A stretch of DNA of 63,786 nucleotides, the filler included, from Reticulomyxa filosa (Eukaryota; Protista; Foraminifera), in NCBI GenBank assembly GCA_000512085.1. It is 13 parts of 13 records of this genome, joined end to end, with 100 filler letters (N's around TTAATTAATTAA, not from the genome) between each part and the next. Parts side by side here need not be neighbours in the genome. Positions count along the whole stretch, not along the records: positions 1 to 27,739 come from ASPP01036605.1; 12 more parts are not named here. The stretch is one strand, 5' to 3'. The notes beneath the pieces were generated by a model. That model was not told where the DNA came from. It worked only from the letters and a program-made list of their open reading frames with translations, and did no database searches. Shown in pieces: positions 1,512-26,030 of this stretch. Position numbers and translations under genes: made by a program. Each line of letters opens with the position of its first letter. Positions within the stretch are counted from its first letter, which is position 1.

Positions 1512-3019
1512 TTAAGCAAGCTTCTGTTTTGTCTCTTTCAAAGCACTTCGAATAATGTCAAGTGCTTGGTGAATTTCCTTCTCATTAATGATCAAAGGTG
1601 GTGCTAATCGGATGATATATTCATGTGTTGGTTTAGCCAACAAACCACGATCTTTCATTAACATACACACTTCCCACGCATTCAAATTTTTGGCTTCATT
1701 GGTAACAATTTCAATTGCGCAAAACAGTCCTTGTCCTCTAACAGTTGTGACAATGTCAGGGAACTCTTGTTTCAATTCCTTTAATCCTTTCAATAAAAGT
1801 TCACCCATTTTGGTGCTGTTTTGCGGCATCTTTTCCTCTCTCAACACAGACAAAGCAGTCATGGCAACTTTGCATGCCAATGGATTTCCTCCGTAAGTAC
1901 TGCCATGAGTTCCCGGAGTCAACACGCCAATGACATCGTCTCTTCCACAGACCGCGCTAATCGGATAAAGTCCACCAGAAAGAGCTTTTCCCAAAGTGAT
2001 CATATCCGCTCGAACATTGAACACACCCTCACCGCACAGCATGGCACCACAACGGCCCAGCCCAGCTTGCACTTCATCACAGATCAAAAGAATGTTATGT
2101 TCATCACACAATTTTCGCACTTGAGTCAAGTAATCCTTGTCCGGGATGACTACCCCTGCTTCTCCTACAACAACGTATACAACATACAGTGTCACAGTCC
2201 CAAACTATATATACATACATTTTGAAAATAAATGCGTAAGTATACTTATGAACATTTACAGATTTATTTATTTGTTTGTTAATTTATTTGTTATATCCAA
2301 AAAAAAAACAAAACAAAACCTTGAATTGGTTCCAACATCACAGCCGCAATTTTTTCACCACCGTGTTGTTTGACGGCTTTTCGCATTGCGTCAATGTCAC
2401 TGTACTTGACTTTGACAAAGTTGGGGACAAATGGCCCGTAGTTGGTATAACTGTCAGGATCCGTGCTTGCGCTCACTGCAGCAATGCTTCGTCCCCAAAA
2501 ATTGTTTTCCGCAAAAATGACAATGGCCTCATTGCTTTTCACGCCTTTCTTCTCGTAGGCCCATCGTCGAGCAATCTTCACACTCGATTCACATGCCTCC
2601 ACACCAGTATTCATCGGCAATACTCGGTCATACTTGAAAAAATTCGTCACAAATTGACAATACTCACCCAACACGTCGTTGTAAAATGCTCGGCTGGTCA
2701 ATGTCAATTTCTGCGACTGTTCTATCAGTGTGTTCACAATTTTCTCATGGCAATGGCCTTGATTCACTGCACTATACGCGCTCAAAAAATCAAAATATTT
2801 CTTGTTGTCCACGTCGTATACGTATACTCCTTTACCGCGGGATATTACCGCCGGAATGGGGTGATAGTTGTGCGCACCAAATTTTGTTTCCAAATCCATT
2901 GCCTTTTTTGCCTTCGAGCTTATTTTCGAGCTCACTGCTGATGCCGTAAACCTACGACGCAGCAAAAATGAATATGAAGGGCATTTTAACGACAATATAC
3001 GTAATATGCGCCGAGACAT
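1512..3019 (-). CDS. OAT: Ornithine aminotransferase, mitochondrial; 2 exons (3019-2320, 2164-1512), about 450 aa
   Basis: Motifs GAHNYHP, DFLSAYSAVNQGHCH, PMNTGVEA, FWGRSIAA, EPIQG|EAGV, DEVQAGLGRCG, PLP lysine in LGKALSGG, HGSTYGGNP. The GT-AG intron 2165-2319 joins EPIQ-GEAG in frame. Arg/Ser-rich N-terminus resembles a transit peptide. Confidence 0.96.
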
Positions 3020-3249
3020 GATCGAAAGTTTTTTTTTTACTTAAAAAAAATCTTGTACCAATTGTTTTGTTTGTAGAAACACTGTGAATTACTTGGCAAA
3101 AAACTGATTTACCGCATAAATTGCCTTTATAATCAAAATTAATTAGTGTTGGCATTGTTCGCTTAAAAGGTTAAGTTTTTTTTAGTGTGGCAAAAGCTAC
3201 AGATTCGTCTTGGCTCAATCAAGTCAAGTCAGCAACCGTTAGAATAATT

Positions 3250-4752
3250 ATGGCTAGTATGAATGAAAAAACACATGAAAACATAGCAAAAGACAGTACT
3301 AAAAAAATTAGCGTGCTTAGAGTTGCGAACGAACGCTATTTACTGGGTGCCAAAGTTGGAAACGGAAGCTTTGGAGTGTTGTATGAAGGCAAGGATGAAG
3401 TAACAGGAGAGACAGTAGCAATAAAAATGGAAAAATGTTCTACCAGCTATCCACAACTGCCGATCGAATACAAAATCTACAGTGGTTTGAAAGGATCTAC
3501 AGGGGTACCCGCAGCAAGATGGTACGGAAAAGAGGGCGACTACAACATTTTAGTGATGGATATGTTGGGGCCAAGTTTGGAAGATTTATTCGTGTTTTGC
3601 AACCGAAGGTTTTCATTAAAGACGATATGTATGCTGGCGATTCAAATGGTAAACAGAAATTTGTATTTCATTTTTAGGGCCAGTCATTTGAAAAAAATTA
3701 AACACAAAAAAACAGTTGAAACAAATCGAAACAGTCCACTCACATAATCTGATCCACAGAGATCTCAAGCCAGAAAATTTTTTAATTGGATTGAATGAAC
3801 ATTTCAATACAGTTCTGTGTTGTTTATTTGTACCTTCTTGCAAAAAAAAACGGAGTGGTTTTTTTTGGATCATTAGGTTTTTGTAATTGATTTTGGCCTA
3901 GCGAAACGATACATGTTAAAGACGAAAAAACACATTCCCCTGATTTGTGGAAAATCACTGACAGGAACGGCCCGTTTTGCAAGCATCAACACACATTTGG
4001 GATACGAGCAATCACGCAGAGACGATCTTGAGACAATAGGCTATGTGCTTTTGTACTTCAAAAGAGGAAGTCTCCCTTGGCAAGGAATAACAGTTCGCAT
4101 CACTTATTTATCTATTTTTTTCTCTTTTTGTATTACACTTTTTTTTTTTTTGATTGGGTGCGAAGTGATCATCTCTTCAAAAACAAAAAGGGTAAAACGA
4201 AAGACACAAAATACCGCCGAATTCGAATGTTAAAAGAGATAACAGGCATTGAAGATTTGTGTGCTGGCCTACCAGAAGAATTTATAACGTATATGAAATA
4301 TTGCCGAAATTTGAGATTTGAAGAAAAGCCAAAGTACGCCTATCTACGTAACTTGTTTAGGGCTGTGTTCAAGAAAAATAAATTAAAAAACGACGGGCGT
4401 TATGACTGGACAGAGAAGTTCTTCAAAAAGGTATAGATTTTTTTGGGTTGTTTTCGAAGAAAAAATTACTCTAATCCTTTTATACTGAGCTGCATCATAC
4501 ACATTATAGAATGCTAACTTTTCTCCTGATACTATCCAATTACCTAGGCAATTTGAAACAAAAACAGAAAAAGCAGATGCACCAACAGAAAAAAATTCGC
4601 ATTCAAGCAGAGATAATGGAGGCTATGACTCGAGCTTATATCCAATTAATGACTATCCAAAAAAACACAAAAAACACCAGAAAAAAGCACTTGACTCTGA
4701 ACCGGATCATACAGCCCCAAATGAGTTCCTTCTTAGTCTTAAAGGGTTATAG
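3250..4752 (+). CDS. CK1: Casein kinase 1 family Ser/Thr kinase; 5 exons (3250-3648, 3716-3811, 3877-4092, 4191-4430, 4510-4752)
   Basis: [22 protein letters not shown]-type motif ([10 protein letters not shown]), [41 protein letters not shown]. All introns are GT-AG and keep frame. Confidence 0.95.
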
Positions 4753-5263: not shown

Positions 5264-7783
5264 ATGACACAAGAAAAAGACGAATTCAAAAGCAATTCTC
5301 AACAGCTCAGCAAAAACGAAGTTGTTCTTGACGCTAAGTTTATTGCTCTCTTCGGTTGTAGTTCACTTTGTTATTACAAAATAAAACATGGGAAAATAGT
5401 GCTCTTGTTCCGGAAATCAATGACACAAATAATACCAGTAATCGAACATTAGGCCTGGTTCCTGAAAGTGAGCATATGGGTGAAGTTGAGAGCCCAACAC
5501 TAAGTTCAAACACGGGTACAGACTCAACTAAAAGGACAGTCCATCCACCCCTTGCAATTAGCTCTCTAAGGAACAACTATTGGGCTAAAAGCATAGTTAT
5601 GCATTATTTTCTCTTGCTTTCCTTTGTACAAAGTTCGACCCCATTGCAATACTAACTCAATATCTAGGATAAAATGCTGATCAGTTCTTGGTACCGATGC
5701 ATTTACTTTGCAATAATTATGCTATCAATATGTTTGTACGATGCCAGTCTAGCGTTTTTAGCAAAATCTTCAGATTGTTTAATAAACATATTTTTGGTGT
5801 TAGCACTTGCATTTTTGGTAATCGATATTCTTTTGCAGACTATTGCGCACAAAACATATTTATTGGCATTTCCTTTTTTTACAGATTTATTTTCGGCTGT
5901 CAGTCTATTTATCGAAATCATTTTTTTTTGGAATTTAGGCAATTCTACTGCAGTTGATTTGAGAAAAAAAAATTATTGCTCTGTTTTCTTTTCTGCAGCT
6001 GTACCGATTCACTAATGTATTTTTTGGGGGGAGAAAGACACGATGGACAAGCATTTATGGCAAGAGCTATGTCCGCTCAGCTACATTGCTTCGATTTTTA
6101 AGAATGTTAATGTGGATACGAAGTGCACGGTTTGTTCGCGTCAGTAGGTTGCTGCAAACAAGACCAGAAAATAATACAACCGAACAACTACAGCAATCCA
6201 ACAAAGAAAATGGTAAAAAAAACAATGATTAGAAAAGTACTGAGACGAGAAAACAACGTGTGTTTTTACAATTGTTTGTTACAATAATAAAAGATAACAC
6301 AAAACCAGAGCCTAATAACAAGGTACAAAATACGGAGAACAGTGGCAAAATCAGTACCAAGCTTGTAGACAATATTTCTCGTCATGTATTAATAGTTTTG
6401 TTGCTAATCATTATGATAACTTCCATTTTAACTACTTTACAATTGCAATCTTATTCTGTATTTGATTATGCGGTTGAAGAACTGGAAGTTCAATATGAAA
6501 AGTACGGGGGGCTAGCACGGCTTTGAGTACAATGATCGATATACTTATTGCAAAGCATCCTGGTTTTCTTTCCTCTACTTTGTTTTATTTTTTTAAAACG
6601 CATTATTGTTTGGATAGAACTAAAAACGCTGAAAGTTGGGATGATCACGTATGCACAAGAGAGTACGCGGAAATTGCGTGCAACTGAAATACTGCAATGG
6701 GAATCTTCAAATGTTTCAATAGAGATTAGTATTAAAAAAGACACCCAGTTAGAACATGCAATGTCATTCGGGTTTTCAATTATAATGATATTAGTATTTT
6801 CTATGTTATTTACAAGAATTAACAGAACAATTCAAAATTTGATAATGTCACCATTAGAAAAGATGGTACGACTGATCGAAGAGTTGACACAACACTTGTG
6901 CTTATTAGGTGAAAATAAAGAAGAACAAAAATTTCTATACACCAACTTGTTTGAGACCGAAGTAATTGAACGAACTATTGAGACATTGTCCAAAATTTTT
7001 GCATCCATTCTAAGCTCCAAAGATCAATTTGATGATATAAAAATTCAGGACGATATCTCAGATACAAACCCAAGAAAAATAAGTGCATATGAACCATTAG
7101 ATGACAACACAAAGCATGCACAAGCGCTAGCCTTGATTGCACAAAAAAGAAAAACGTCCACTCAGTCTCGTGAGTCAATCATTCGTTTTAATGTTCGTCA
7201 AGAAAATGTAATTGAGGCACGGATCCAAGAACAAATTAGTGTGTTAGAAAATTCTTCTGATTTAACATCATTTCAAATCAAACTGGAACATTTCCCTGAG
7301 CTAAAAAATATTGAGGTAAGCTGGATTATAAAAATATTTGAGTCTTCAATCATCTTGAATGTTTTTATTATACTATGACTTAAAAAAAAAAAGGCGACTC
7401 TGGCTCATTCAGTAGCAACAGAATATTTCAAACTGTTTTGCCGACAGCAAATGGCAGAGGAAGCATATCATTTTGTAAAAGGTGTTAATAAATATCGAGA
7501 GCACGTCAAACAACACTTTGAAAAAATTTTGAAAACATACATTTTTGATAATTCTTATTCCTGCATTGGAGTTTCTCAAAGAGAACAAAATGAATTAAGG
7601 AAACATCTATCAGACATGAGTATATACGCCAACAGTTTTGATGCATTAACTATGGACGCGCTGAATGTCCTCCATTCCCAAGTATTTGGATCTTTCCTTA
7701 AATCCAAATATGCTTTAGCTTACATTATTTCTCAGCCGCAAAATAGAAAGAGATTTTCACATTTATTTTTATTAAGTCAGTAG
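5264..7783 (+). CDS. 6TM membrane protein with S1-S4 voltage-sensor-like domain, HAMP-like linker and C-terminal RGS domain; exons approx. 5264-5320, 5362-5595, 5668-5952, 6038-6212, 6294-6562, 6618-7315, 7394-7783
   Basis: S2 FLVIDILL, S3 FFTDLFSAVSL and S4 LLRFLRMLMWIRSARFVRVSRLL (exon 6038-6212), then two more TM helices and LIMSPLEKMVRLIEEL...ETEVIERTI. RGS signature: ATEYFKLFCRQQMAEEAYHFVKGVNKY...ILKTYI...IGVS...SFDAL...LHSQVFGSFLKSKY. The model needs a one-base correction in the G6 run at 6506-6511. The first exon is the least certain. Confidence 0.8.
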
Positions 7784-8316
7784 TTTGTTTTATATTGAAT
7801 GGATACAGTTGATCTCAATATATGCTGTTTTTTTTCAAAAAAGCACTTATTTAATTGATAAAGATCATTGTGCTTTTTTAATGTTTCTTTAGGCCACATT
7901 GTTTTTGTTTCAATTTGTGGAAGTGTTTCATCAATTTTACTTAGTGTTCCATTAATATCACTATTAAAGAAGAATTATTACAATTTTTATTGTACTATTT
8001 TCTTTTTTATAAAGAGATTGATTACGTACTGTATTTATATAGAACCAGTTCAGTGAATTTGAAGGATTGATCAAAGTTAAAACACAAAACTGTACAGCAA
8101 GTAATAACTAAAATCAATTATTTCAGAAAGTGCAATTAAAACTTGACGCTTGAAAATGATCCTTTTAATGAATTCAACGCGTTATATGTGTTCGTAGTAA
8201 AGAATTTGCTTAATAACAGAAAAAATTAATAAATAAAATTGAAATGATTTTTTTAGACACAAGTGAAAGAACGCAAGATTCGTTGTGGGTAAGGCAAAAA
8301 AAAAATCTAGTGGAAC

Positions 8317-11086
8317 ATGGCGAAATTAGAACATATTGATAATGATTTCAGCCACAAACAGAGGCAAGAGACATCTAGTATGGCCTCTAGTCTTTCTCTT
8401 TATAGTTGCAACGACAAAGGATTTATGGAGTTTAGCGATCAATTGGTGATTGACAAGCGTTACAAGCTGCAGAAGCCAAAAGGGGTGGACGAGCTCGAAC
8501 TCGATCACGGGAAAGGTCGTTACGGGTCTGTATATTGTGCGTATGATACCGAAGAAAAAAATTACAAAGCCATTAAAATATTGAAGTTGCCTGAAAAAGA
8601 CGGTGACGACGTTACGAATGACAATAGCAACTTGTTTTTTTTTTTTTTGTGTGTGCAAATATAAATATAAATATGAATACATCATATATGTGCATATACA
8701 TATATATATATATATATCAGACTTATATCCATCGTGAATTGCGAGTGCTAAAACGGATAAGTAGTAATCATTTAGGTGAAAAGGACAATCCGAAGATCAA
8801 CTGCCCCTTTGTAATCGAACTGTTGGGATATGGGTGGTATAAACGCCATTGTTATTTTGTATTTAATTATTTCGAAGTGACATTGCAACAGCACCTCGAC
8901 TACATTTTGCAGCTGAATTTGGAAAGCGTGGAAAAACTCAAACAACTCAATAAAAAAAGTAAAAGCTGGGGGCAAAAGTCCGACCAATGCCATTCATTCC
9001 AAATTTCTCAAACAAGACAACCATCGCAACACAAATAACAATAACAACAGCCGTAATCATAGCAACAATAACAAGAGCAGTCATTACAATTTTCAAAAAA
9101 TGGAAAAGCTTATTCACATTTACAAAAATGTCGTCATGCATCCGTTTGACGTGTGGATTGTGTTTTTTCAATTACTGCATGCTCTCGCTTGTTCAGTTTC
9201 TTTATATACAAAAAAAAAAAAAAAAGTATACGTATTCATCATATTTACGCGTTTTTGTCCTGTCAAAAAAAAAAAAAAAGGGGGAACATTTCGGGAAGGG
9301 GGGGGAAGAGAAAAAAAAAGTGTGATTCAAGTGAAAGCTTCTCCTACCTCCCCCCCTCCTTTTCTTCCTCTTTTGTCTTTTATTTTATTAAAATGAATTG
9401 ATTTTAAAGTGTACGCGTGTGCGAATGTGTACATATGTATATTAAATATATATACATATACACATACATATTTATAAGTATGTATGTATGTATGGGAATG
9501 ACATTAGATATCCATAACATTTGCAAGGTGATGCATTTGGACTTGAAGCCGAACAATATAATGATAAACAATTACAAAGTGGCGAAAATCAGCAGCGGTG
9601 ACCAGTACACACTAATAAAACTGGTGAACCCTCGAGTGACGCTGATCGACTTTAGCGTGAGCACAAAGATGGCGAGAGATGTGGACTTGGACGACTACGC
9701 GTGCCGCGGGTACTATGGGACACGAAGATATCGCGCGCCGGAGATGATTTTCGGAGGAGCGTGGAACCGGTCCATTGACACGTTCGGGTTGGCGTTGATC
9801 GTGTTGGAATGTATTCAATTGGCGCCATTGTTCGAAAACAAGTATTATGACCAAGACGGACGTCGTTTTGAGCAGCTGAAAGACAGCAAAGGGAGAAAGA
9901 CGTACGAGCCAAGAGAGGTCATTGACTATCTTATGCGAATGGCAAAGACCTGTTTGGGAAGGCCATCTCATCAATTCGTCAATTGTGTCGACAAGCAATT
10001 TCAGCCACTTCTTAAAGACACTGTCACTATACCTGAGTTTATCGAATATCAAACAAAAAAAGGTCTATATTTAATAAGCATATTCCACTTGGTCTATCTT
10101 CTTCTTCTTCTTCTTCTTCTTCTTCTTCTTCTGCTACGACTTCTGCTTCTACTTTTTCTTCTTCTCCTACTTCACCTGCATCCTCATTCTCTCTGCCGAC
10201 CAAAGATGACCTCTCCAAGGCCGCCGCTAACTTAATTGGAAATCCGTATTACACGCCCACCATCTATGGCAATGAAGACATGGCCGAATATAGGCCGACG
10301 CTATCGCAGATCCATCAATCGCATTTGTACGTGTGGCCCAAGGAGTATGTGACGGGCACCTACTTCAAGGTCTACCAACCTTTCATTGATCGCAAAATGG
10401 TCTTTGACAGAGACGTCGCGCGCTTGAACCAAACCAAAATTGCTATCAACCAAATCCTGCGATGGAACCCCATTGATCGCTGGACTCCTGAACTCATTCT
10501 CCAAAACCATTTCCAACAGGACAAAGACTATTTGCTCTCCTGTCTCTTCACCAAAGAACAATTCGCTACGTTGCTTGACCATGGCTTCACTGATGATTTC
10601 ATCTATGGTGGTCACTATCCATCTTCCGTCTCTCAATCACATAAAACTATTGGTATATATGTACATATATATATATATATTTCTTTTCTTTTCTTTTAGT
10701 TTATTTGATATATGCATATGTAAATATATGTACATATGCATATGTAATAAATAGATCATAATAGCAGAGATGTATCTTCGATGCTGTCACAGGGCAAATG
10801 TGTTGGACGGAATGAAACAACGAAAAAAAAGATTGAAATTGAAAATGAAAATAAATATGAAAGAAATCATAACACGGTGTCACGTCCTCTTCAAATTATG
10901 AAAACCACAAAGAATATTGTCACCACACAAACTTCGAAGGGTGCTCACGTGGGTGACAAAAGTCAAACAGCCACTCCACAAGCTACTAATGCTGGTCTGT
11001 TGAGTGCTCATTTCAACAAAATGACCTTAAAACCAACGCCAGTATCCAAAGTCACTGCTCACACCATTGCTGGGCAGTCCAAATAA
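8317..11086 (+). CDS. Divergent CMGC (CLK/DYRK-like) protein kinase with Asn-rich and poly-Ser inserts; introns approx. 8611-8720, 9191-9507, 10652-10754
   Basis: GKGRYGSV, KAIKI, HLDLKPNNI, LIDFS, GTRRYRAPE, WNRSIDTFGL, LRWNPIDRWT. Two apparent frameshifts in A7 runs (8952-8958, 10055-10061). Confidence 0.82.
10097..10132 (+). repeat. (TCT)12 microsatellite encoding poly-Ser in the kinase
   Basis: Read directly. The ORF track shows it off-frame as poly-Leu. Confidence 0.9.
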
Positions 11087-12915: not shown

Positions 12916-13715
12916 ATGACTAAGATGGCATCTTCAAAAAAACGTGGTGCGTTCATTGTATTGGAGGGCATAGATCGTTCTGGTAAGTCGACCCAATCAA
13001 AGAAATTGCACGAGCACTTAACGGCGCAAAAAATTGCAAACCAATTGATCCGATATCCTGATAGAACCACAATCACTGGTATGAGTTCTCTAATGTGACT
13101 GTCCTCCCGCTCTATCACAATGAACTAGAGACGTTGTAAGACTGCAAACAAAACAAAAAATTAGGTAAACTGCTCAACGAGTATTTACAATGCAAACAAG
13201 AGGTTGACGATAGGGCCATCCATTTGATATTTAGTGCAAATAGACATGAAGCAAAACAGCAGCTTTTGTCTTGGCTTGAAGAGGGATACACGGTGATATG
13301 CGATCGCTACAGCTATAGTGGAACAGTGTATACGTATAGCAAAAACGTGATAAAGCGCGATAAAATGGAGAAAGAAGGCGATAAGAGTATTAAGTCTCAG
13401 AAAGCTCTTGATTGGGAGTGGTGCAAACACGTAGACCAGGGACTGATTCAACCCGACGTGGTTATTTATTTAAATGTCAAAGATCTTGCAACGGTGAAAA
13501 ATAGGGGAGAATTTGGAAATGAGCGATACGAAAATGAGGCCATGTTAAAGCAGGTGTTGAAAAGCTACCAAACTTTTCTTGCTGAAGATGCCGACAAAAA
13601 AATCTGGTCTATTGTCGATGCCAATCAAGCTGTTGAAGATGTCCACAAACAAATTGTTAGCATTACATTGGCCACAATTGAAAGTGTGGCTTCAAAGCCT
13701 GTTCAATATTTGTGA
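12916..13715 (+). CDS. DTYMK: Thymidylate kinase; intron 13079-13164
   Basis: RGAFIVLEGIDRSGKSTQ P-loop, RYPDRTT, FSANRHE, DRYSYSG, PDVVIYL, GNERYE. Confidence 0.95.
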
Positions 13716-14933: not shown

Positions 14934-15301
14934 TATAGAGTTTTATCACTATTACGTTTTCTCCTCCCCTTTTTTTTCTTCCTTTTCATTTTTCCAATTT
15001 TTTTGTGTTGTGTTGCGCTGCGTTATATGTTTCACCATCAAATCATTTAACGGCATTGAAACACCACCATTTTATTAGACTACTTGGAATACTAATATTA
15101 TTGTTCTACTCAAATGATAAATTTTTTTAGCACATTTCCGACCAACATTTTTCAAAATAGCTGAGTCTACAACTTGAAATTTTCGAGTAGTTTGTTGCCT
15201 TCTCATTTTCAAACAAACATTTGGTCTCTGACAGTTGCATTATGGCAAATATCAAAACAGTTCAAACAAAAAACTGTGACAAAAAAAAAGGGGGCTAGAT
15301 G

Positions 15302-16570
15302 ATGCCCAAAATAGCCAGCTGCAAATTAAAGACAAAGCATTGGTCACAATATTTTCGAAGTTTGCACATTCCTCGTGTAAGTAAGCAGAATATCCAGACT
15401 TATTATTTTTGTTATCAGCAAAGGGCGCCACAATCGACAAAAAAAGACGAACCAAAAGAGCGGAAAGGGGCAGCCGTGCAGCTGTCCCCGACATCGTACA
15501 CAGCTTGTCGGATTGAAGCGATATGGCAAGATACCCACAACGTGAAAAGGTACCGTGTGGCGTTACCACGGTCGGATTTGCCGTTGGATCTTCCGGTAAG
15601 CTCGGCAGTGAAATTTCGCGGTTTCGAAAAAGCGAACAACGCAGAAATTGTCCGATCTTATACGCCGGTGAATGACCCCACATTGATCGGTGCGGCTGAT
15701 TTCGTTGTCAAATTGTACCCCAATGGCTTGATGAGCAATTATTTGCGCGATTTGCAAGTCAATGATACCATCGACATTACTGGGCCTTTTCTAAAAATAC
15801 CCATCCCTCGTGCGTTTCTTGGAAAGTCACAGATTGTTATGATTTGTGGAGGTTATCTTTTTTTTTTTTTTTTGACATCCAAATATGTATACATTTATGT
15901 ATACGTAAGATATGTATATAAATATATACGTATATATGTGTATATTCATTTTCCCTCCTTCCACATCCCCCTTTTTTTAAAAAAAATCTTTACGGGACCC
16001 CTTTCACTTAAAAAAAAAAAATTTATAGGGACGGGATTAGCTCCAATGGTTCAAACTTTAAAAGAAATTTGTCGTCTTTTGACTTCTCCGAACGATGAGG
16101 AGAGAGGGGACGCTTGTGAAATCGTGCGTGGGATTAACGAGATTGCACTGATCAATTGCAATAAAAGCGAACAAGATATCATTTGTATGAGCGACTTGCA
16201 AAGTATTGAAAGCACTTTTGCGAGTGTGCTCTCATTGGCTGATCAACAGCGCAATCGCGGTAATATCAAGTTCCACTGTTCTCATGTCTTGGAAACAGTT
16301 GGAAAATGTAGTCCATCTAACTTGACAGGACAAGGACAAAAAAGTCATAAGGTGCTACATGTAGGGCTTTTGAACACGTCTTTGTTAAAAAATACTTTGC
16401 CTCCACCAAATGATCGTGTATTAATTCTTGTTTGTGGCTCTGCGAATATGCTTACACACGTGTGTGGCAACACCGAGCGAGACCCTCAAACTCGACGCAA
16501 AATTCAGGGAGAAGTTGGAGGTATTTTGAAGGAGCTTGGATACAAACCTAATATGGTGTACAAATTTTAA
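15302..16570 (+). CDS. NADH-cytochrome b5 reductase family flavoprotein, probably mitochondrial (MCR1-like); intron 15852-16028
   Basis: RSYTPV, VVKLYPNGLMSNYL, GP, MICGG|TGLAPM, LVCGS, QGEVGGILKELGY...VYKF. Confidence 0.9.
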   Translation: MPKIASCKLKTKHWSQYFRSLHIPRVSKQNIQTYYFCYQQRAPQSTKKDEPKERKGAAVQLSPTSYTACRIEAIWQDTHNVKRYRVALPRSDLPLDLPVSSAVKFRGFEKANNAEIVRSYTPVNDPTLIGAADFVVKLYPNGLMSNYLRDLQVNDTIDITGPFLKIPIPRAFLGKSQIVMICGGYLFFFFLTSKYVYIYVYVRYVYKYIRIYVYIHFPSFHIPLFLKKIFTGPLSLKKKKFIGTGLAPMVQTLKEICRLLTSPNDEERGDACEIVRGINEIALINCNKSEQDIICMSDLQSIESTFASVLSLADQQRNRGNIKFHCSHVLETVGKCSPSNLTGQGQKSHKVLHVGLLNTSLLKNTLPPPNDRVLILVCGSANMLTHVCGNTERDPQTRRKIQGEVGGILKELGYKPNMVYKF

Positions 16571-17204: not shown

Positions 17205-18600
17205 ATGGGTCTTCACAACTCCAAATTTAAGAAAACGGCCATTGTCCCTGAAAACAAGACAAATGACCCAAAGAATAACATACCTTTGACTTCTAATGAC
17301 AAATATGGCTTTACACGTCAAATGAAGAAGCCTAAACCACTTAATAACCACCACAAAGACATTAAATTGATCTCTTTCAATCAGCATCTAAACAATGAGA
17401 AGTTTCAATAATTTCTGAGAAAATTTTAGAAAAAAGTTTACTCCTTTTGGTTTTATAGTATTAAATAAAATCTGAAATAAATTGGACTAATAGCTATAAA
17501 AATTTGATTGGACAGCTAACCGTTCAAGAGTTGTTACATTTGAGTATCCATGGAATTCCATTTGAATACAGATGCTATTTATGGAAGTATTTTTTGAGGC
17601 TAGACTCTTACTACAGCACATATGCAAAAAAGCACAACAAATCACTACCAGATCACTACCAATCAGTACATGACACTCAAAGTGACAAAATTAAAGACAT
17701 CCAACTACTGCAAGGAGATATTAAAAGGACGTTTCCTTCTCATCCTTTGTTTGCCGATGAGACTCAGGAAATGGCAAAAAAGCTTCACCACATTTTAAAA
17801 GCATATAGTATCATGAGCACTGACATTGGCTACGTGCAAGGATTGAATTATATTGGAGGACTATTGTTGTTCCATTTGAGTGAAACAGATGCATTGGCAG
17901 TGCTTTTGTCAATAACCAAAAGAAACAACTTTTTTAATATGAAAAAAATATTTGACGAAAAAATAACAATGGAGTGAAATTTTTGCAAACATGTGTGCAA
18001 AAGTTTGATGATGGTTTTAAAAAAAACTTTGAAAGATTATTTAAAAAGTTACAACATGCCAATATCATAAGTGTAGCATACGCCACTTCTTACTATGTCA
18101 CATTGTTTGCATACTGCTGTGAGGTTTCCGTATGTGCAAGGATATGGGATTTTTTAATTTTGTTGCCGTATTTAATGTCAACAAATATGACACTATCTGT
18201 GCACGATATTATCACAAAAATTGCAATAGAGTTTATTAGGTTACGAGAATATGAATTCAAAAAGTTGAAACCAAGTTTTGCTCACGTTTTTTATTTTATT
18301 CGTGTAGATCATCTTGTTTAAATATTATTTTTTATTTTTTTTTTAACAAGTCGAAATTGTTCAGAAACTAAGAACGTGGGATTTGGAAGAAAGTGAAATG
18401 TTTCAAATCTTTGAAAACATTTTGAAAGATTATGAGATACGAAAGAATTCCAACGAACAAATTGCAACTGTTTTTATGTTCAATACTACTCTTAGAATGG
18501 AGTCCAATTCAAACAGCACGGGATGCGAAAGCATCACATAAAATACAAACATATCAAAAATCATCTTTTTTTTTTTGGAGTTGTATTTTCAACCTCAATC
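17205..18600 (+). CDS. TBC-domain Rab GTPase-activating protein (exon boundaries and 3' end approximate)
   Basis: GIPFEYRCYLW, DIKRTFP (Arg finger), GYVQGLNYI (Gln finger), ARIWDFL. N-terminal MG start. Frameshift in the A run at 17958-17963; first exon junction unresolved. Confidence 0.8.
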
Positions 18601-19435: not shown

Positions 19436-20788
19436 ATGACTACTTTAAGTAATGAGAAACAAGGCTCAATACAACAAGCATTGGTAAACTTTCTTTTTTA
19501 ATTTTTGAGAAGACTTGTTAACACTGTATTTATTGTATGATATTTAGTCAGAAGAAGAAAGGACCCAAATTATTATTACAAATTGGATTCGAATATCCAA
19601 CATTAAACTAGGATGGATCAATGATTTTAATAAATTTATTGTCAATTATGTTATGTTTATATGTTTAAATATTTATGTATTATATTCATTTATAATTTAA
19701 CATAGGCTGCAACTATCGTTATGCTTGATATGTTCCTTTCATCAGCTAAACTATTAAAGACCCTAACTGGGCACACATATAATGTGTGTAGTATTGATTA
19801 TACAACATTTAATGATTGTCAACTCATTTGTTCTGGATCAGCTGATAAAACAGTTCGTGTATGGGATATAGAAACAAATAAACAAATTCAATTATTCAAT
19901 GGACATTTAGGTTATGTATATTCTGCAAAATTTTCATCATATCATAACTACAATTATCATCGCAATGTCATTTGCTCTTCATCAACTGACAAAACAATTC
20001 GTTTTTCTGATGTGAACGATAATCAACAACTACAAGTATTTAATGAACATACACAAGGTGTTCTTGATATTGAATTTTCATCATTTAATGGTGGTAGATA
20101 TTTATGTTCTGGATCAAAAGATAAAACTATTCGTTTATGGGATGTTGAAACATCAAAGAATTTACATACTTTTAATGGACATGAAGAATCTGTTTGGAGT
20201 GTAAAATTTTCACCATTGCAAAACAATAACAACAATATTGGTGTAATTGGTGGTAATGGATATACTATTTGTTCTGGATCACGGGATAAAACCATTCGGA
20301 TATGGGATGTTGAAACAACCAAACAATTAATTGAATTCAAAGGGCATGAAAAATGGATTATGAACGTAAAATATGGATCAAATAAATTAGGAAATATTGG
20401 TTGTTCAAATACAATATTATCTTCGTCACAAGATAATAGTGTTCGTTTATGGGATATTCGATCTGGTCAACAAATTCAAATATTTAATGGACATAAACAT
20501 TGGATTCATGAAGTAGAATATTCACCATTTGTAATAAATAACATTGAAGTTGGAGGTTTTTCTAATGTTATATGTTCTGCATCGTTAGATAAGACAATTC
20601 GTTTTTGGGACATTCGATCAAATAAGGATCAACTTCACGCAATCCATGCAGATGCAAGAGAAGATAAAGGAATACTATGTCTTAAATTTATATCATTAAA
20701 AAAGAAAAATGAAGAAAAAATAAATGATAATTGCGATATTCATTTATACTATGGTTCATTCAAAGGTTATATTCGTGTTTGGGGATGA
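19436..20788 (+). CDS. WD40 repeat protein of a lineage-expanded family; exons 19436-19483, 19548-19649, 19706-20788 (approx.)
   Basis: About 6-7 GH...ICSGS.DKTIR.WD repeats, the family insert IGVIGGNGYTICSGS, and the terminal YGS.KG.IRVWG. Confidence 0.92.
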
Positions 20789-24308: not shown

Positions 24309-26030
24309 CTACAACTTGTTGAATTGTTTTTCCATAGCGGCAAAGTTTTGGCCACCAGATAAACTTTCCAAAGCCAAAATTAAAGCTTGTGTGCCCTTTC
24401 TTCCATGTCCTTGGGCCTGCAATGCAATATAAAGTTGTTGTGCCAAAGCTAAACCAGGCAAAGACAAATTCATTCGCTTGCTTTCCTCCAATGCAATGCC
24501 CATATCCTTAATGAAATGTTCAACAAAAAACCCAGGATTAAAATCTCCTTTCACAATTCGATGTCCCAAAACATTTATTGAAAAAGAAGCAGCGCCGCCA
24601 CCACCAACCTTTTTTATTTGTTTTTTTTGCAAGCAAAACAAATACATAACAATGAAAAAAATTACAACACACATACACAATAAATACCGCTTTGATGACT
24701 TCTTCCAAATTTAAGCCAACTTTGTGAGCATACAATAGTCCTTCACAAACACCGATCTGCAAATACACATTTAAAACAATAGTATATTTTATGTTTAATT
24801 TCGTGTGTTTGTTTGAATGAGTGCCGTAAAAAAAAAAATCAATGCAATCAAAACAATCGCCGACCATATTGGAAGCAATCAAAATTTGATTGACCATTTT
24901 GGTGTGTTGTCCTCGTCCGGCAGATCCCATGTATTGAATGGTTTTTCCCATGTGTTGAAACAGCCCATGAACTTTATCTAAAGCATCTTTGTCACCACCA
25001 ACCATTATCGACAGCGTTGCATTTTTTGCACCAACGTCGCCGCCACTTACCGGGGCATCTTTATTTGTACGTATATATTTTTTTGCCCGTGCACATCTCT
25101 GTATGTGCAAAAAAAAAAATACACATATACATATACGTATATATAAATATAAACAAACCGAGTGATTTGACATTCTTCTTGCTTGCTTCGATTGCAATTT
25201 CTTCTGCCAAACTGGGCTATTGGGATCGCATGGACACAATATTGACATGTAACACTATGAAAGTGGGATTGGTTATGAGACGACTCTTTTTTGGAGTTGG
25301 ACACTTTCAAAACTTCACTCGTGGTCATATCGACAATAATGGAGCCCGCTTTGGCTCCTGCGAGTGTCCCTTTTTTTCCTAAAATGGTTTCTCTTACATC
25401 TTTGGGATATCCAACAATGCTAAATATCACGTCTGTTTTGTTTTATTTATTTCGTTTTGCTTTTGAATGATTGAAGGGTGATATGACATCACAGGCAAAA
25501 TCGACAACTGAATAATTGACAATAATAACCTGATTGTTGAGCGACGTGCATTGGCGATTCTGCAAATTTTGCACCCAGTTTTTCAAGGGGCTCACATTTT
25601 GAACGTGTTCGATTAAAGATTGTCGTCTGTTTGATTGATATTTTTTCGTATTTGTCATTTCGTCTTCTTTTATTATCGTTATTTCTTTTATAGCAATTAA
25701 ACACGTCCATTTGTTTATGTTTTTATTTATTCATTTGTTTGTTTGTAATACTTCACTGGGTATCCTGCTTTTATTAAATGCTCGCACATGTGTCTACCCA
25801 TAACACCTGTTTTTGATGTTGATTTGTTTTGTTTGTTCTACTTTTTTTGAAATTTTTTGTTGCGAAGATTTAACAAATAAATGGATCTGAATTGGCGTGA
25901 TATTTTGAGTCGCAAAGACACCCTTACCTGTTCCGATCCATCCCACTTTCAAGTCTTTCTGACTAGATAATGATCTTATACTTAGAGATACAAGCTTTTG
26001 GTGGGTTGCCATTTTTCTTAACGAATGCAT
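24309..26030 (-). CDS. 3-hydroxyisobutyrate dehydrogenase-like / beta-hydroxyacid dehydrogenase (6PGD NAD-binding family), multi-exon
   Basis: [46 protein letters not shown], catalytic [21 protein letters not shown]. Confidence 0.93.

Follow-up and report, generated by a model that had tools for sequence, protein, structure and literature searches.

The window analysed here is a joined stretch of 63,786 nucleotides from the genome assembly of the foraminiferan Reticulomyxa filosa (102 Mb, 50,809 contigs). On its first contig (C36605), positions 5264-7783 (+) hold a gene of seven exons, whose product of ~690 amino acids (aa) joins a voltage-sensor-type membrane domain to a regulator of G-protein signalling (RGS) domain. 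The locus is RFI_35292 (ETO02146.1, UniProt X6LL87), labelled in GenBank as "RGS domain-containing protein" with 910 aa. The gene is a member of a small conserved family of membrane proteins, with a domain order of cytoplasmic N-terminus, helices S1-S4, disordered linker, a fifth transmembrane helix (TM5), an alpha/beta ectodomain, a sixth helix (TM6), a helical linker, a variable spacer and a cytoplasmic RGS domain. Since the same input module carries a cyclase or a phosphodiesterase in other protists, the RGS domain substitutes for an enzymatic output.

The gene region is AT-rich (31-34% G+C) with short GT..AG introns, and a scripted border check confirmed GT..AG borders, lengths of 55-96 nt and compatible phases for all six introns of the gene. 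Tests on the window were run exon by exon, those on full-length proteins with natural homologs. Exons 1 and 2 are tentative predictions from open frames and splice signals; homology gave no support for exon 1, and the NCBI model begins at ATG 5674 instead. In a paralog from the same genome (see below), too, an exon further upstream is spliced on immediately ahead of DKLLS, paralleling exon 2. Exon 5 aligns with the family block SK(I/V)G..D.I(T/S)R.V and TM5, and exon 6 is 34% identical to the paralog across 232 aa, with an intron position and phase common to both. The conserved helical linker of exon 6 (6821-7048) reads LIMSPLEKMVRLIEEL...ETEVIERTIETL.

The sequence features that an earlier, sequence-only reading of this stretch had listed were all present at the positions it gave. 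Among them is the S4 exon 6038-6212, which has clean borders (AG at 6036-6037, GT at 6213-6214), encodes TRWTSIYGKSYVRSATLLRFLRMLMWIRSARFVRVSRLL... and is, as had been claimed, missing from the annotation. The public model ETO02146.1 (P0002 in our set) spans 5674-10235; it omits this exon, where it follows another frame, and overruns the stop codon at 7781-7783 into a downstream kinase gene. Because the C-terminus RKRFSHLFLL matches the KRRFSHLNL tail of homologs, the gene ends at 7783 and not in the kinase gene. ETO02146.1 also treats the intron sequence 6557-6617 as coding. An alternative acceptor for exon 4 at 5999 was rejected, as the paralog exon starts at the equivalent of 6038. The public model of the paralog, RFI_27444 (P0001, ETO09934.1), loses part of S4 as well, and the present analysis therefore corrects two GenBank gene models. 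The features of the gene are collected in Table 1.

Table 1. Features of the R. filosa gene in the window (all on the + strand) and residues of its RGS domain at G-alpha contact positions of RGS4
Feature	Position	Content	Basis
Exon 1 (tentative)	5264..5337	start codon, N-terminal cytoplasmic residues; phase-2 end, GT at 5338	open frame and GT..AG borders
Exon 2 (tentative)	5400..5595	hydrophilic N-terminal region	in frame with exons 1 and 3 via 62- and 72-nt GT..AG introns
Exon 3	5668..5952	S1, S2, S3; S2 Asp (VIDIL), S3 Asp (FFTDLF)	three hydrophobic spans, profile matches
Exon 4	6038..6212	S4 helix (6086-6154), start of cytoplasmic S4-TM5 linker; phase-1 end	sequence, paralog exon, hhalign
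Exon 5	6309..6562	rest of linker, TM5 (~6383-6439), first ectodomain helices; phase-1 end	hydropathy, family alignment
G6 homopolymer	6506..6511	reading-frame break, frame 2 to frame 1	sequence, paralog comparison
Exon 6	6618..7315	ectodomain beta-strand half, TM6 (~6764-6808), helical linker (6821-7048), spacer ending FPELKNIE	alignments with paralog and relatives
Exon 7	7394..7783	RGS domain and stop codon TAG 7781-7783	PF00615, family RGS profile
RGS4 E87		window copy Glu (kept)	
RGS4 N88		window copy Ala	
RGS4 N128		window copy Gly	
RGS4 D163		window copy Gln	
RGS4 R167		window copy Ser	

Six-frame searches of the genome with the exons of the window gene revealed one paralog on contig C23808 (minus strand), and a family profile search found only these two module-bearing genes in the assembly. 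The exon order of the paralog is the same (S1-S3, S4, TM5 and loop, large exon, RGS). Exons of the two copies start at homologous residues and share their intron phases, with identities of 27-39% by exon (~35% overall). The S4 exon is not a chance reading, since the corresponding exon of the paralog has the same start (SNWTT... against TRWTS...) and carries RLLRFARVARLAK.

Among 1.84 billion representatives, 15 proteins were retrieved with a profile built from the large exon of the two paralogs; further ones came from a second search. All full-length relatives (P0003, P0006, P0007, P0009, P0012, P0016, P0018 and P0039) possess S1-S3, a long Arg-periodic S4, TM5, a loop of ~90-100 aa, TM6, the PIERMT..IQEF / ET.VIEAAI linker and the RGS domain. 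P0003 and P0012 are each encoded by a single uninterrupted intronless open reading frame (ORF), on metagenome contigs 13.7 and 135 kb long. P0017, a protein deduced from a transcript of the foraminiferan Bolivina argentea, is continuous from S1 into the RGS domain, and P0005 from Nonionella stella covers TM6, linker and RGS. Because the paralog, the two metagenome ORFs and the Bolivina transcript hold the same architecture, with the relatives in one frame, we have hardly any doubt that the fusion of a voltage-sensor-type domain with an RGS domain is a real family. The earlier proposal that membrane part and RGS exon belong to one gene is thus borne out. The architecture was not among the Atlas clusters of at least 50 members, and full-text searches on voltage-sensor + RGS, Ion_trans + RGS, Reticulomyxa + RGS or PF26726 found no paper describing such a protein, in line with the statement of the sequence-only reading that it knew of none. 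Database tags for the parts exist already (the UniProt name and precomputed Pfam matches); the combination is rare, undescribed and shared with other foraminifera. Two intact intronless homologs (L010 3001-5487 and L011 3001-5715) suit direct expression and electrophysiology. A separate observation concerns the S3-S4 loop, where the motif VARGGRAGRAAR just before S4 adds four Arg and is nearly invariant in the foraminifer-like clade; it is carried by P0003, P0006, P0007, P0009 and P0016-P0021, and both R. filosa copies are without it.

The voltage-sensor-type domain was assessed with a family alignment and profile that hold no rows from the window. Exon 3 matched this alignment with an hhalign probability of 99.5% (E 1.3e-22) and was found independently by the family profile in a six-frame search (E 2.9e-8), and the S4 exons of both R. 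filosa copies matched with a probability of 93.8% (E 1.7e-7). Three hydrophobic spans in exon 3 and the amphipathic S4 in exon 4 make up a bundle of four transmembrane helices. As had been noticed earlier, S4 is an Arg-periodic helix of 23 aa; it reads RxxRxxMxxRxxRxxRxxR with six Arg at three-residue spacing, and across the family S4 has 5-10 Arg so spaced. All 19 family members in the alignment have D or E at the S2 position, and none deviates from Asp at the S3 position; the window copy and the paralog agree in both Asp. In the family profile the S2 Asp aligns to Shaker E293, the S3 Asp to Shaker D316 and five charges of S4 to Shaker R1, R3, R4, K5 and R6.

Searches of the PDB with the family sensor profile matched Shaker and CaV1 sensors only (E 0.01-0.12), and the two-sequence exon profiles gave nothing useful there. 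With the Pfam gathering cut-off for Ion_trans at 25 bits, the homologs P0007, P0012 and P0009 (residues 1-170) scored 26.0, 26.1 and 27.5 bits and three others 17.7-21.8 bits. Thirteen of the 19 family sensor segments matched Ion_trans at E <= 0.01 and none matched another Pfam family; in whole proteins the matches cover profile positions ~3-127 of 241 only. An AlphaFold model of P0009 reached predicted local distance difference test (pLDDT) values of 76-93 in S1-S3 and 56-73 in S4. Its best match among 48,161 solved chains, found with an exhaustive aligner, was Kv4.2 (Z 10.1, root-mean-square deviation 3.2 A, 112 aa), accompanied by the Ci-VSP sensor (4g7v; Z 10.0, deviation 3.4, 119/136 aligned), KvAP (Z 9.6, 127/132 aligned) and then the Kv2.1, NaV, CaV, TPC, HCN and SLC9C1 sensors. 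It is this uniform list of voltage sensors, not Z itself, that counts as evidence for the predicted fold. Foldseek with the whole 756-aa homolog model matched the RGS part only, the sensor being seen only by the exhaustive aligner. We consider a response of this domain to voltage likely, with considerable reserve.

The RGS domain is clearly recognisable. Exon 7 scored 39.4 bits against PF00615 (E 9.1e-10, profile positions 6-113 of 117), the paralog 26.8 bits and the homologs 31.6-40.9 bits (gathering cut-off 23.9 bits). The window exon alone had no match in the PDB at E <= 0.01, and a 12-sequence family RGS profile matched RGS4 (E 1.2e-13; 1agr, E 1.9e-13), RGS7, RGS1, RGS2 and RGS8 ahead of RGS-homology (RH) proteins. 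The modelled C-terminus of a homolog matched RGS18, RGS1, RGS8, RGS16 and RGS4 with a Foldseek probability of 1.00 (E from 4.6e-3, TM-score by target 0.41-0.50), and the assignment of the last exon to the RGS family in the sequence-only reading stands.

Between sensor and RGS domain lie TM5, the ectodomain loop of ~90 aa, TM6 and the linker LIMSPLEKMVRLIEEL...FETEVIERTIETL, which had been seen before and are both present in the window and conserved in the family. The preceding S4-TM5 linker is disordered and 45-130 aa long. Folded alone, the TM5-loop-TM6 part of P0009 gave a mean pLDDT of 81 (ectodomain >90), and in the model the long helix of TM5 is followed by two helices and four strands, after which a helix of 58 residues runs through TM6 into the linker. 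A pore helix or selectivity filter was not found: the Ion_trans matches end at about position 127 of 241, and neither the window nor the alignments contain a GYG-like motif, whose absence had already been remarked on. Pore domains matched the model at Z 6.2-7.0 (Kv and CatSper, 6.2-6.4), within noise, and other solved structures were at noise level as well (WalK, the top Foldseek row, E 0.06; Cache domains, Z ~7). TM5-ectodomain-TM6 as modelled has no clear solved relative, and we put forward neither a Cache or PAS fold nor a pore fold. As modelled, TM5-loop-TM6 is not pore-like and resembles a two-TM ectodomain sensor.

The nearest shapes in the ESM Atlas were eukaryotic PF26726 (Helical_RasGEFs) clusters with Guanylate_cyc from Chlorophyta and Bacillariophyta (TM-score 0.63-0.67) and a PF26726 cluster with PDEase_I from Perkinsozoa (0.62), and next came bacterial HAMP/HisKA sensor kinases (0.47-0.53). 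Precomputed PF26726 matches exist in P0003, P0007, P0009, P0012 and P0016-P0020, and the window linker is 34-39% identical to the PF26726 regions of homologs. For HAMP (PF00672), the window linker had no Pfam match, one of 21 family linkers matched at E 0.15, and the linker profile matched no HAMP structure in the PDB. A homodimer prediction for the TM5-linker module scored 0.26 against a mark of 0.32, which counts neither for nor against dimerisation. In diatoms, Triparma and Ectocarpus, class III cyclases carry the input module of sensor, TM5-ectodomain-TM6 and linker, and it is also fused to a phosphodiesterase. The comparison with an ion-channel-like N-terminus of cyclases drawn in the sequence-only reading accordingly holds for the input module on class III cyclases elsewhere and fails for the S5-loop-S6 part, which is not channel-like. 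In a further protein, P0022 (JGI metagenome, 1275 aa), a phosphodiesterase domain lies N-terminal to the sensor module and a cyclase-like domain follows it; a single protein would then both synthesise and degrade cyclic nucleotide, on either side of one sensor.

The explanation that we prefer is that the gene encodes a member of this family in which the sensor is coupled to the RGS domain. Membrane potential would move S4, with the ectodomain possibly reading an additional signal; relayed by TM5/TM6 and the long helix of TM6 and linker, the signal would reach the RGS domain and alter its encounter with membrane-bound G-alpha-GTP, and the electrical or chemical state of the membrane could in this way tune heterotrimeric G-protein signalling. 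We assign this explanation as a whole a probability of about 0.5. The stronger version, in which voltage controls G-protein signalling through a GTPase-activating protein (GAP), is plausible but on balance rather unlikely. Just as doubtful is the notion that foraminifera and some uncultured relatives may have a voltage-regulated RGS protein, a further class of non-channel voltage-sensor effector beside the voltage-sensing phosphatase (VSP), SLC9C1 and the sensor-cyclases.

If true, membrane potential would determine, in the absence of a G-protein-coupled receptor, how long activated G-alpha persists or how available it is, and in other protist lineages cyclases and phosphodiesterases would be driven by this same interchangeable module. 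That evolution has attached the module to outputs of three kinds (cyclase, phosphodiesterase and RGS) points to a portable input device of general use in protists, of which the RGS version would link the electrical state directly to heterotrimeric G-protein signalling. Very few proteins turn voltage into an output other than ion flux; a review of the field covers voltage-gated channels, VSP, the sperm Na+/H+ exchanger and the protozoan channel-cyclases (PMC10651576). In the R. filosa genome, G-alpha accounts for at least 145 exon-level matches (377 candidates), RGS for at least 61 and Ion_trans for 151. Potential partners of the RGS domain thus abound, and with so large a G-alpha repertoire its regulators may matter for the large reticulopodial network of this organism.

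Several observations weigh against this explanation, some of which feed the alternatives considered below. In the sensor, the profile alignment has Met at the position of Shaker R2 and Leu at that of Shaker F290. The S2 Phe that had been named together with the two acidic counter-charges lies one residue before this Leu and is not the charge-transfer aromatic; the two Asp themselves stand. Single exons of the window gene and of the paralog had no Pfam match to Ion_trans (PF00520), and C36605 was not among the matches listed in a six-frame Ion_trans scan of the genome. Z values of about 10 are attainable by chance for helical bundles, and the fold evidence for the sensor comes from the homolog P0009, not from the joined window protein.

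The reading frame is a second point. Frame 2 is closed by a stop codon at 6524-6526 and frame 1 opens only at 6499, and the only homopolymers between them are a run of six G at 6506-6511 and a run of four A. The G run and its frame break, both noticed earlier, are real in the assembly. In frame 1, the peptide of 6511-6561 (ASTALSTMIDILIAKHP) matches the end of the paralog exon (MDTTLNDLVERFIAKYP) in register up to the shared phase-1 donor, with an ungapped score reached by none of 1000 shuffles; BLASTP of this 21-aa peptide against the paralog found nothing, the query being too short. GenBank bypasses the break by an intron at 6502-6555, which we rejected because the resulting peptide shows no similarity to relatives (932 of 1000 shuffles score as well). 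The homologous frame would be regained with one added base at the G run (or elsewhere in 6499-6523), and therefore either the assembly under-calls the G homopolymer or the window copy is broken. An intact window copy requires that one G is missing from the assembly at 6506-6511, which we think probable.

The break could nevertheless be real and the window copy a decaying pseudogene, with function retained solely by the paralog or by orthologs from other foraminifera. It falls within a conserved helix of the ectodomain, the assembly contains no second copy or allele of the gene, and the window copy is short of more RGS contact residues than most relatives. On the other hand, it is the sole disruption across ~2.1 kb of coding sequence, none of the six introns has lost its GT..AG borders or a compatible phase, the conserved motifs on either side are undamaged, and the break lies in a homopolymer of an assembly described as highly fragmented (PMC5784254). 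Decay of this copy appears rather unlikely to us.

A third point concerns the chemistry of the RGS domain. Both R. filosa copies lack equivalents of the G-alpha contact residues N88, N128 and D163 of RGS4 (the paralog has G, P, L and Q at N128, E87, N88 and D163), whereas ten other R. filosa RGS exons keep all three, with the Asn of (I/L/V)N(I/L/V)S at N128, the Glu, N or S at N88 (EN or ES) and the Asp of D.F.RF at D163. Across the family, T, C, S, N, P, A and G all occur at the N128 position. Since both copies lack contacts that the other RGS domains of the genome keep, we regard the RGS fold as present and classical GAP chemistry as doubtful, and the earlier proposal of a GAP is weakened to that extent. 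That the domain is a GAP has, judging from its residues, somewhat less than an even chance; it may bind G-alpha in an altered way or serve as a docking domain.

RH domains are used for docking or input in GRK2 and the RH-RhoGEFs. By analogy, the RGS part could recruit G-alpha or another partner, or let activated G-alpha regulate the module. The degenerate contacts in both copies and the variable N128 position agree with this, and RH proteins (axin, GRK2/5, SNX13/25) are among the matches of the family RGS profile. However, the best PDB matches are catalytic RGS proteins of the R4/R7 type, as opposed to E 1e-5 to 1e-3 for RH domains, and Glu is kept at E87 in the window copy, with EN or ES in most family members. 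In RGS4, replacing N128 by a small residue lowers GAP activity without eliminating it. A role confined to docking or input is unlikely in our view.

A fourth point is the distance between sensor and output: a disordered linker and a second sensor-like module intervene, and for this reason we only infer that the two are coupled. The protein might be a receptor-type RGS instead, in which the ectodomain is the true sensor of a ligand or ion, signalling via TM6 and linker like a two-TM HAMP sensor, with S1-S4 a voltage-silent structural or localising appendage. The well-modelled ectodomain and the length of the disordered linker between S4 and TM5 fit such an arrangement, as do the bacterial HAMP/HisKA kinases that follow the PF26726 proteins among the nearest shapes, WalK as top Foldseek row and the Cache sensor domains. 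The HAMP and Cache matches are, however, at noise level (Z <8 for the latter), and the S4 Arg ladder and the S2/S3 acids are kept in RGS-, cyclase- and phosphodiesterase-type members alike, a conservation across output types that argues for selection on the charge system. We hold this receptor-type reading to be quite unlikely. That membrane part and RGS exon are two adjacent genes is very improbable: the public model is wrong in other respects (S4 omitted, fusion to the downstream kinase), but the same order recurs in the paralog, in the single ORFs P0003 and P0012 and in the Bolivina transcript protein, and the exon 6/exon 7 junction is in phase at homologous residues (FPEL...|ATL.H).

Other genes surround the locus. 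Downstream lies the multi-exon protein-kinase gene already mentioned (8317-10235, +; Pkinase E 4.1e-15 for 9417-10235), near the end of which an array of ~26 TCT triplets (10097-10173) encodes a poly-Leu tract. Upstream are kinase-like exons at 3187-4436 (+; Pkinase E 1.3e-4 for 3187-3747), where the frame 3913-4233 contains a casein-kinase-1-like motif as judged by eye, and a class-III aminotransferase gene of two exons at 1512-3019 (-; Aminotran_3 E 1.6e-66 and 2.8e-45). Housekeeping neighbours encode a thymidylate kinase (13224-13715), an FAD/NAD-binding oxidoreductase (15299-16570), a RabGAP-TBC protein (17504-17977), a WD40 propeller (19721-20788, all +) and a 6-phosphogluconate-dehydrogenase-type NAD-binding protein (24538-25248, -).

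Among known systems, the sensor-cyclases come closest to the input side of the R. filosa protein. A family combining voltage sensor and cyclase occurs in stramenopiles and alveolates and has been described for Phytophthora zoospores (PPTG_13136-type; PMC12223298), and the channel-cyclases of Paramecium, Plasmodium and Tetrahymena are those of Weber et al. 2004, as cited in PMC10651576. The protozoan channel-cyclases are functionally uncharacterised as recombinant proteins (PMC10651576). Sensor-cyclases share with our protein S1-S4 with an Arg-rich S4, two more transmembrane helices and a helical linker before a cytoplasmic signalling domain. Cyclases of diatoms, bolidophytes and brown algae align with it over the whole input module, with SFFFWLD, the S4 Arg ladder, SKVG..D.ITR, LV..PIE.M and ET.V.E.AI as common motifs. 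They differ in their output, a class III cyclase where the R. filosa protein has an RGS domain. The alveolate channel-cyclases are described with a K+ pore, while the R. filosa protein is without a pore signature. No alveolate cyclase was among the matches listed in the relatives search, which ochrophyte sequences saturated and which established no direct homology to the ciliate and apicomplexan proteins of Paramecium and Plasmodium; the sole alveolate link to the input module is the Perkinsozoa phosphodiesterase cluster, found by shape.

In Ci-VSP a voltage sensor drives a cytoplasmic signalling enzyme and not a pore, and this sensor ranks with the best structural matches to the homolog model. 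However, the enzyme of Ci-VSP follows S4 via a short linker, whereas in the R. filosa protein the disordered linker, two transmembrane helices, the ectodomain and the helical linker intervene, and phosphatase and C2 domains are absent. On the output side, the 7TM-RGS proteins of the AtRGS1 type exert a receptor-like control of G-alpha deactivation by a membrane-embedded sensor with a C-terminal cytoplasmic RGS domain. This fusion is common to both; in contrast to AtRGS1, the R. filosa protein has six transmembrane helices, four of them a sensor-type bundle with Arg-periodic S4, no 7TM fold and no catalytic-site Asn. Kinases of the WalK/YpdA type resemble its middle part in the succession of transmembrane helix, alpha/beta ectodomain, transmembrane helix and a continuous helix into a helical linker with Pro near its start. 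The R. filosa protein has no significant sequence match to HAMP or to solved HAMP/Cache structures, and it differs from these kinases in being eukaryotic, in its added voltage-sensor domain and in carrying an RGS domain instead of a kinase as output.

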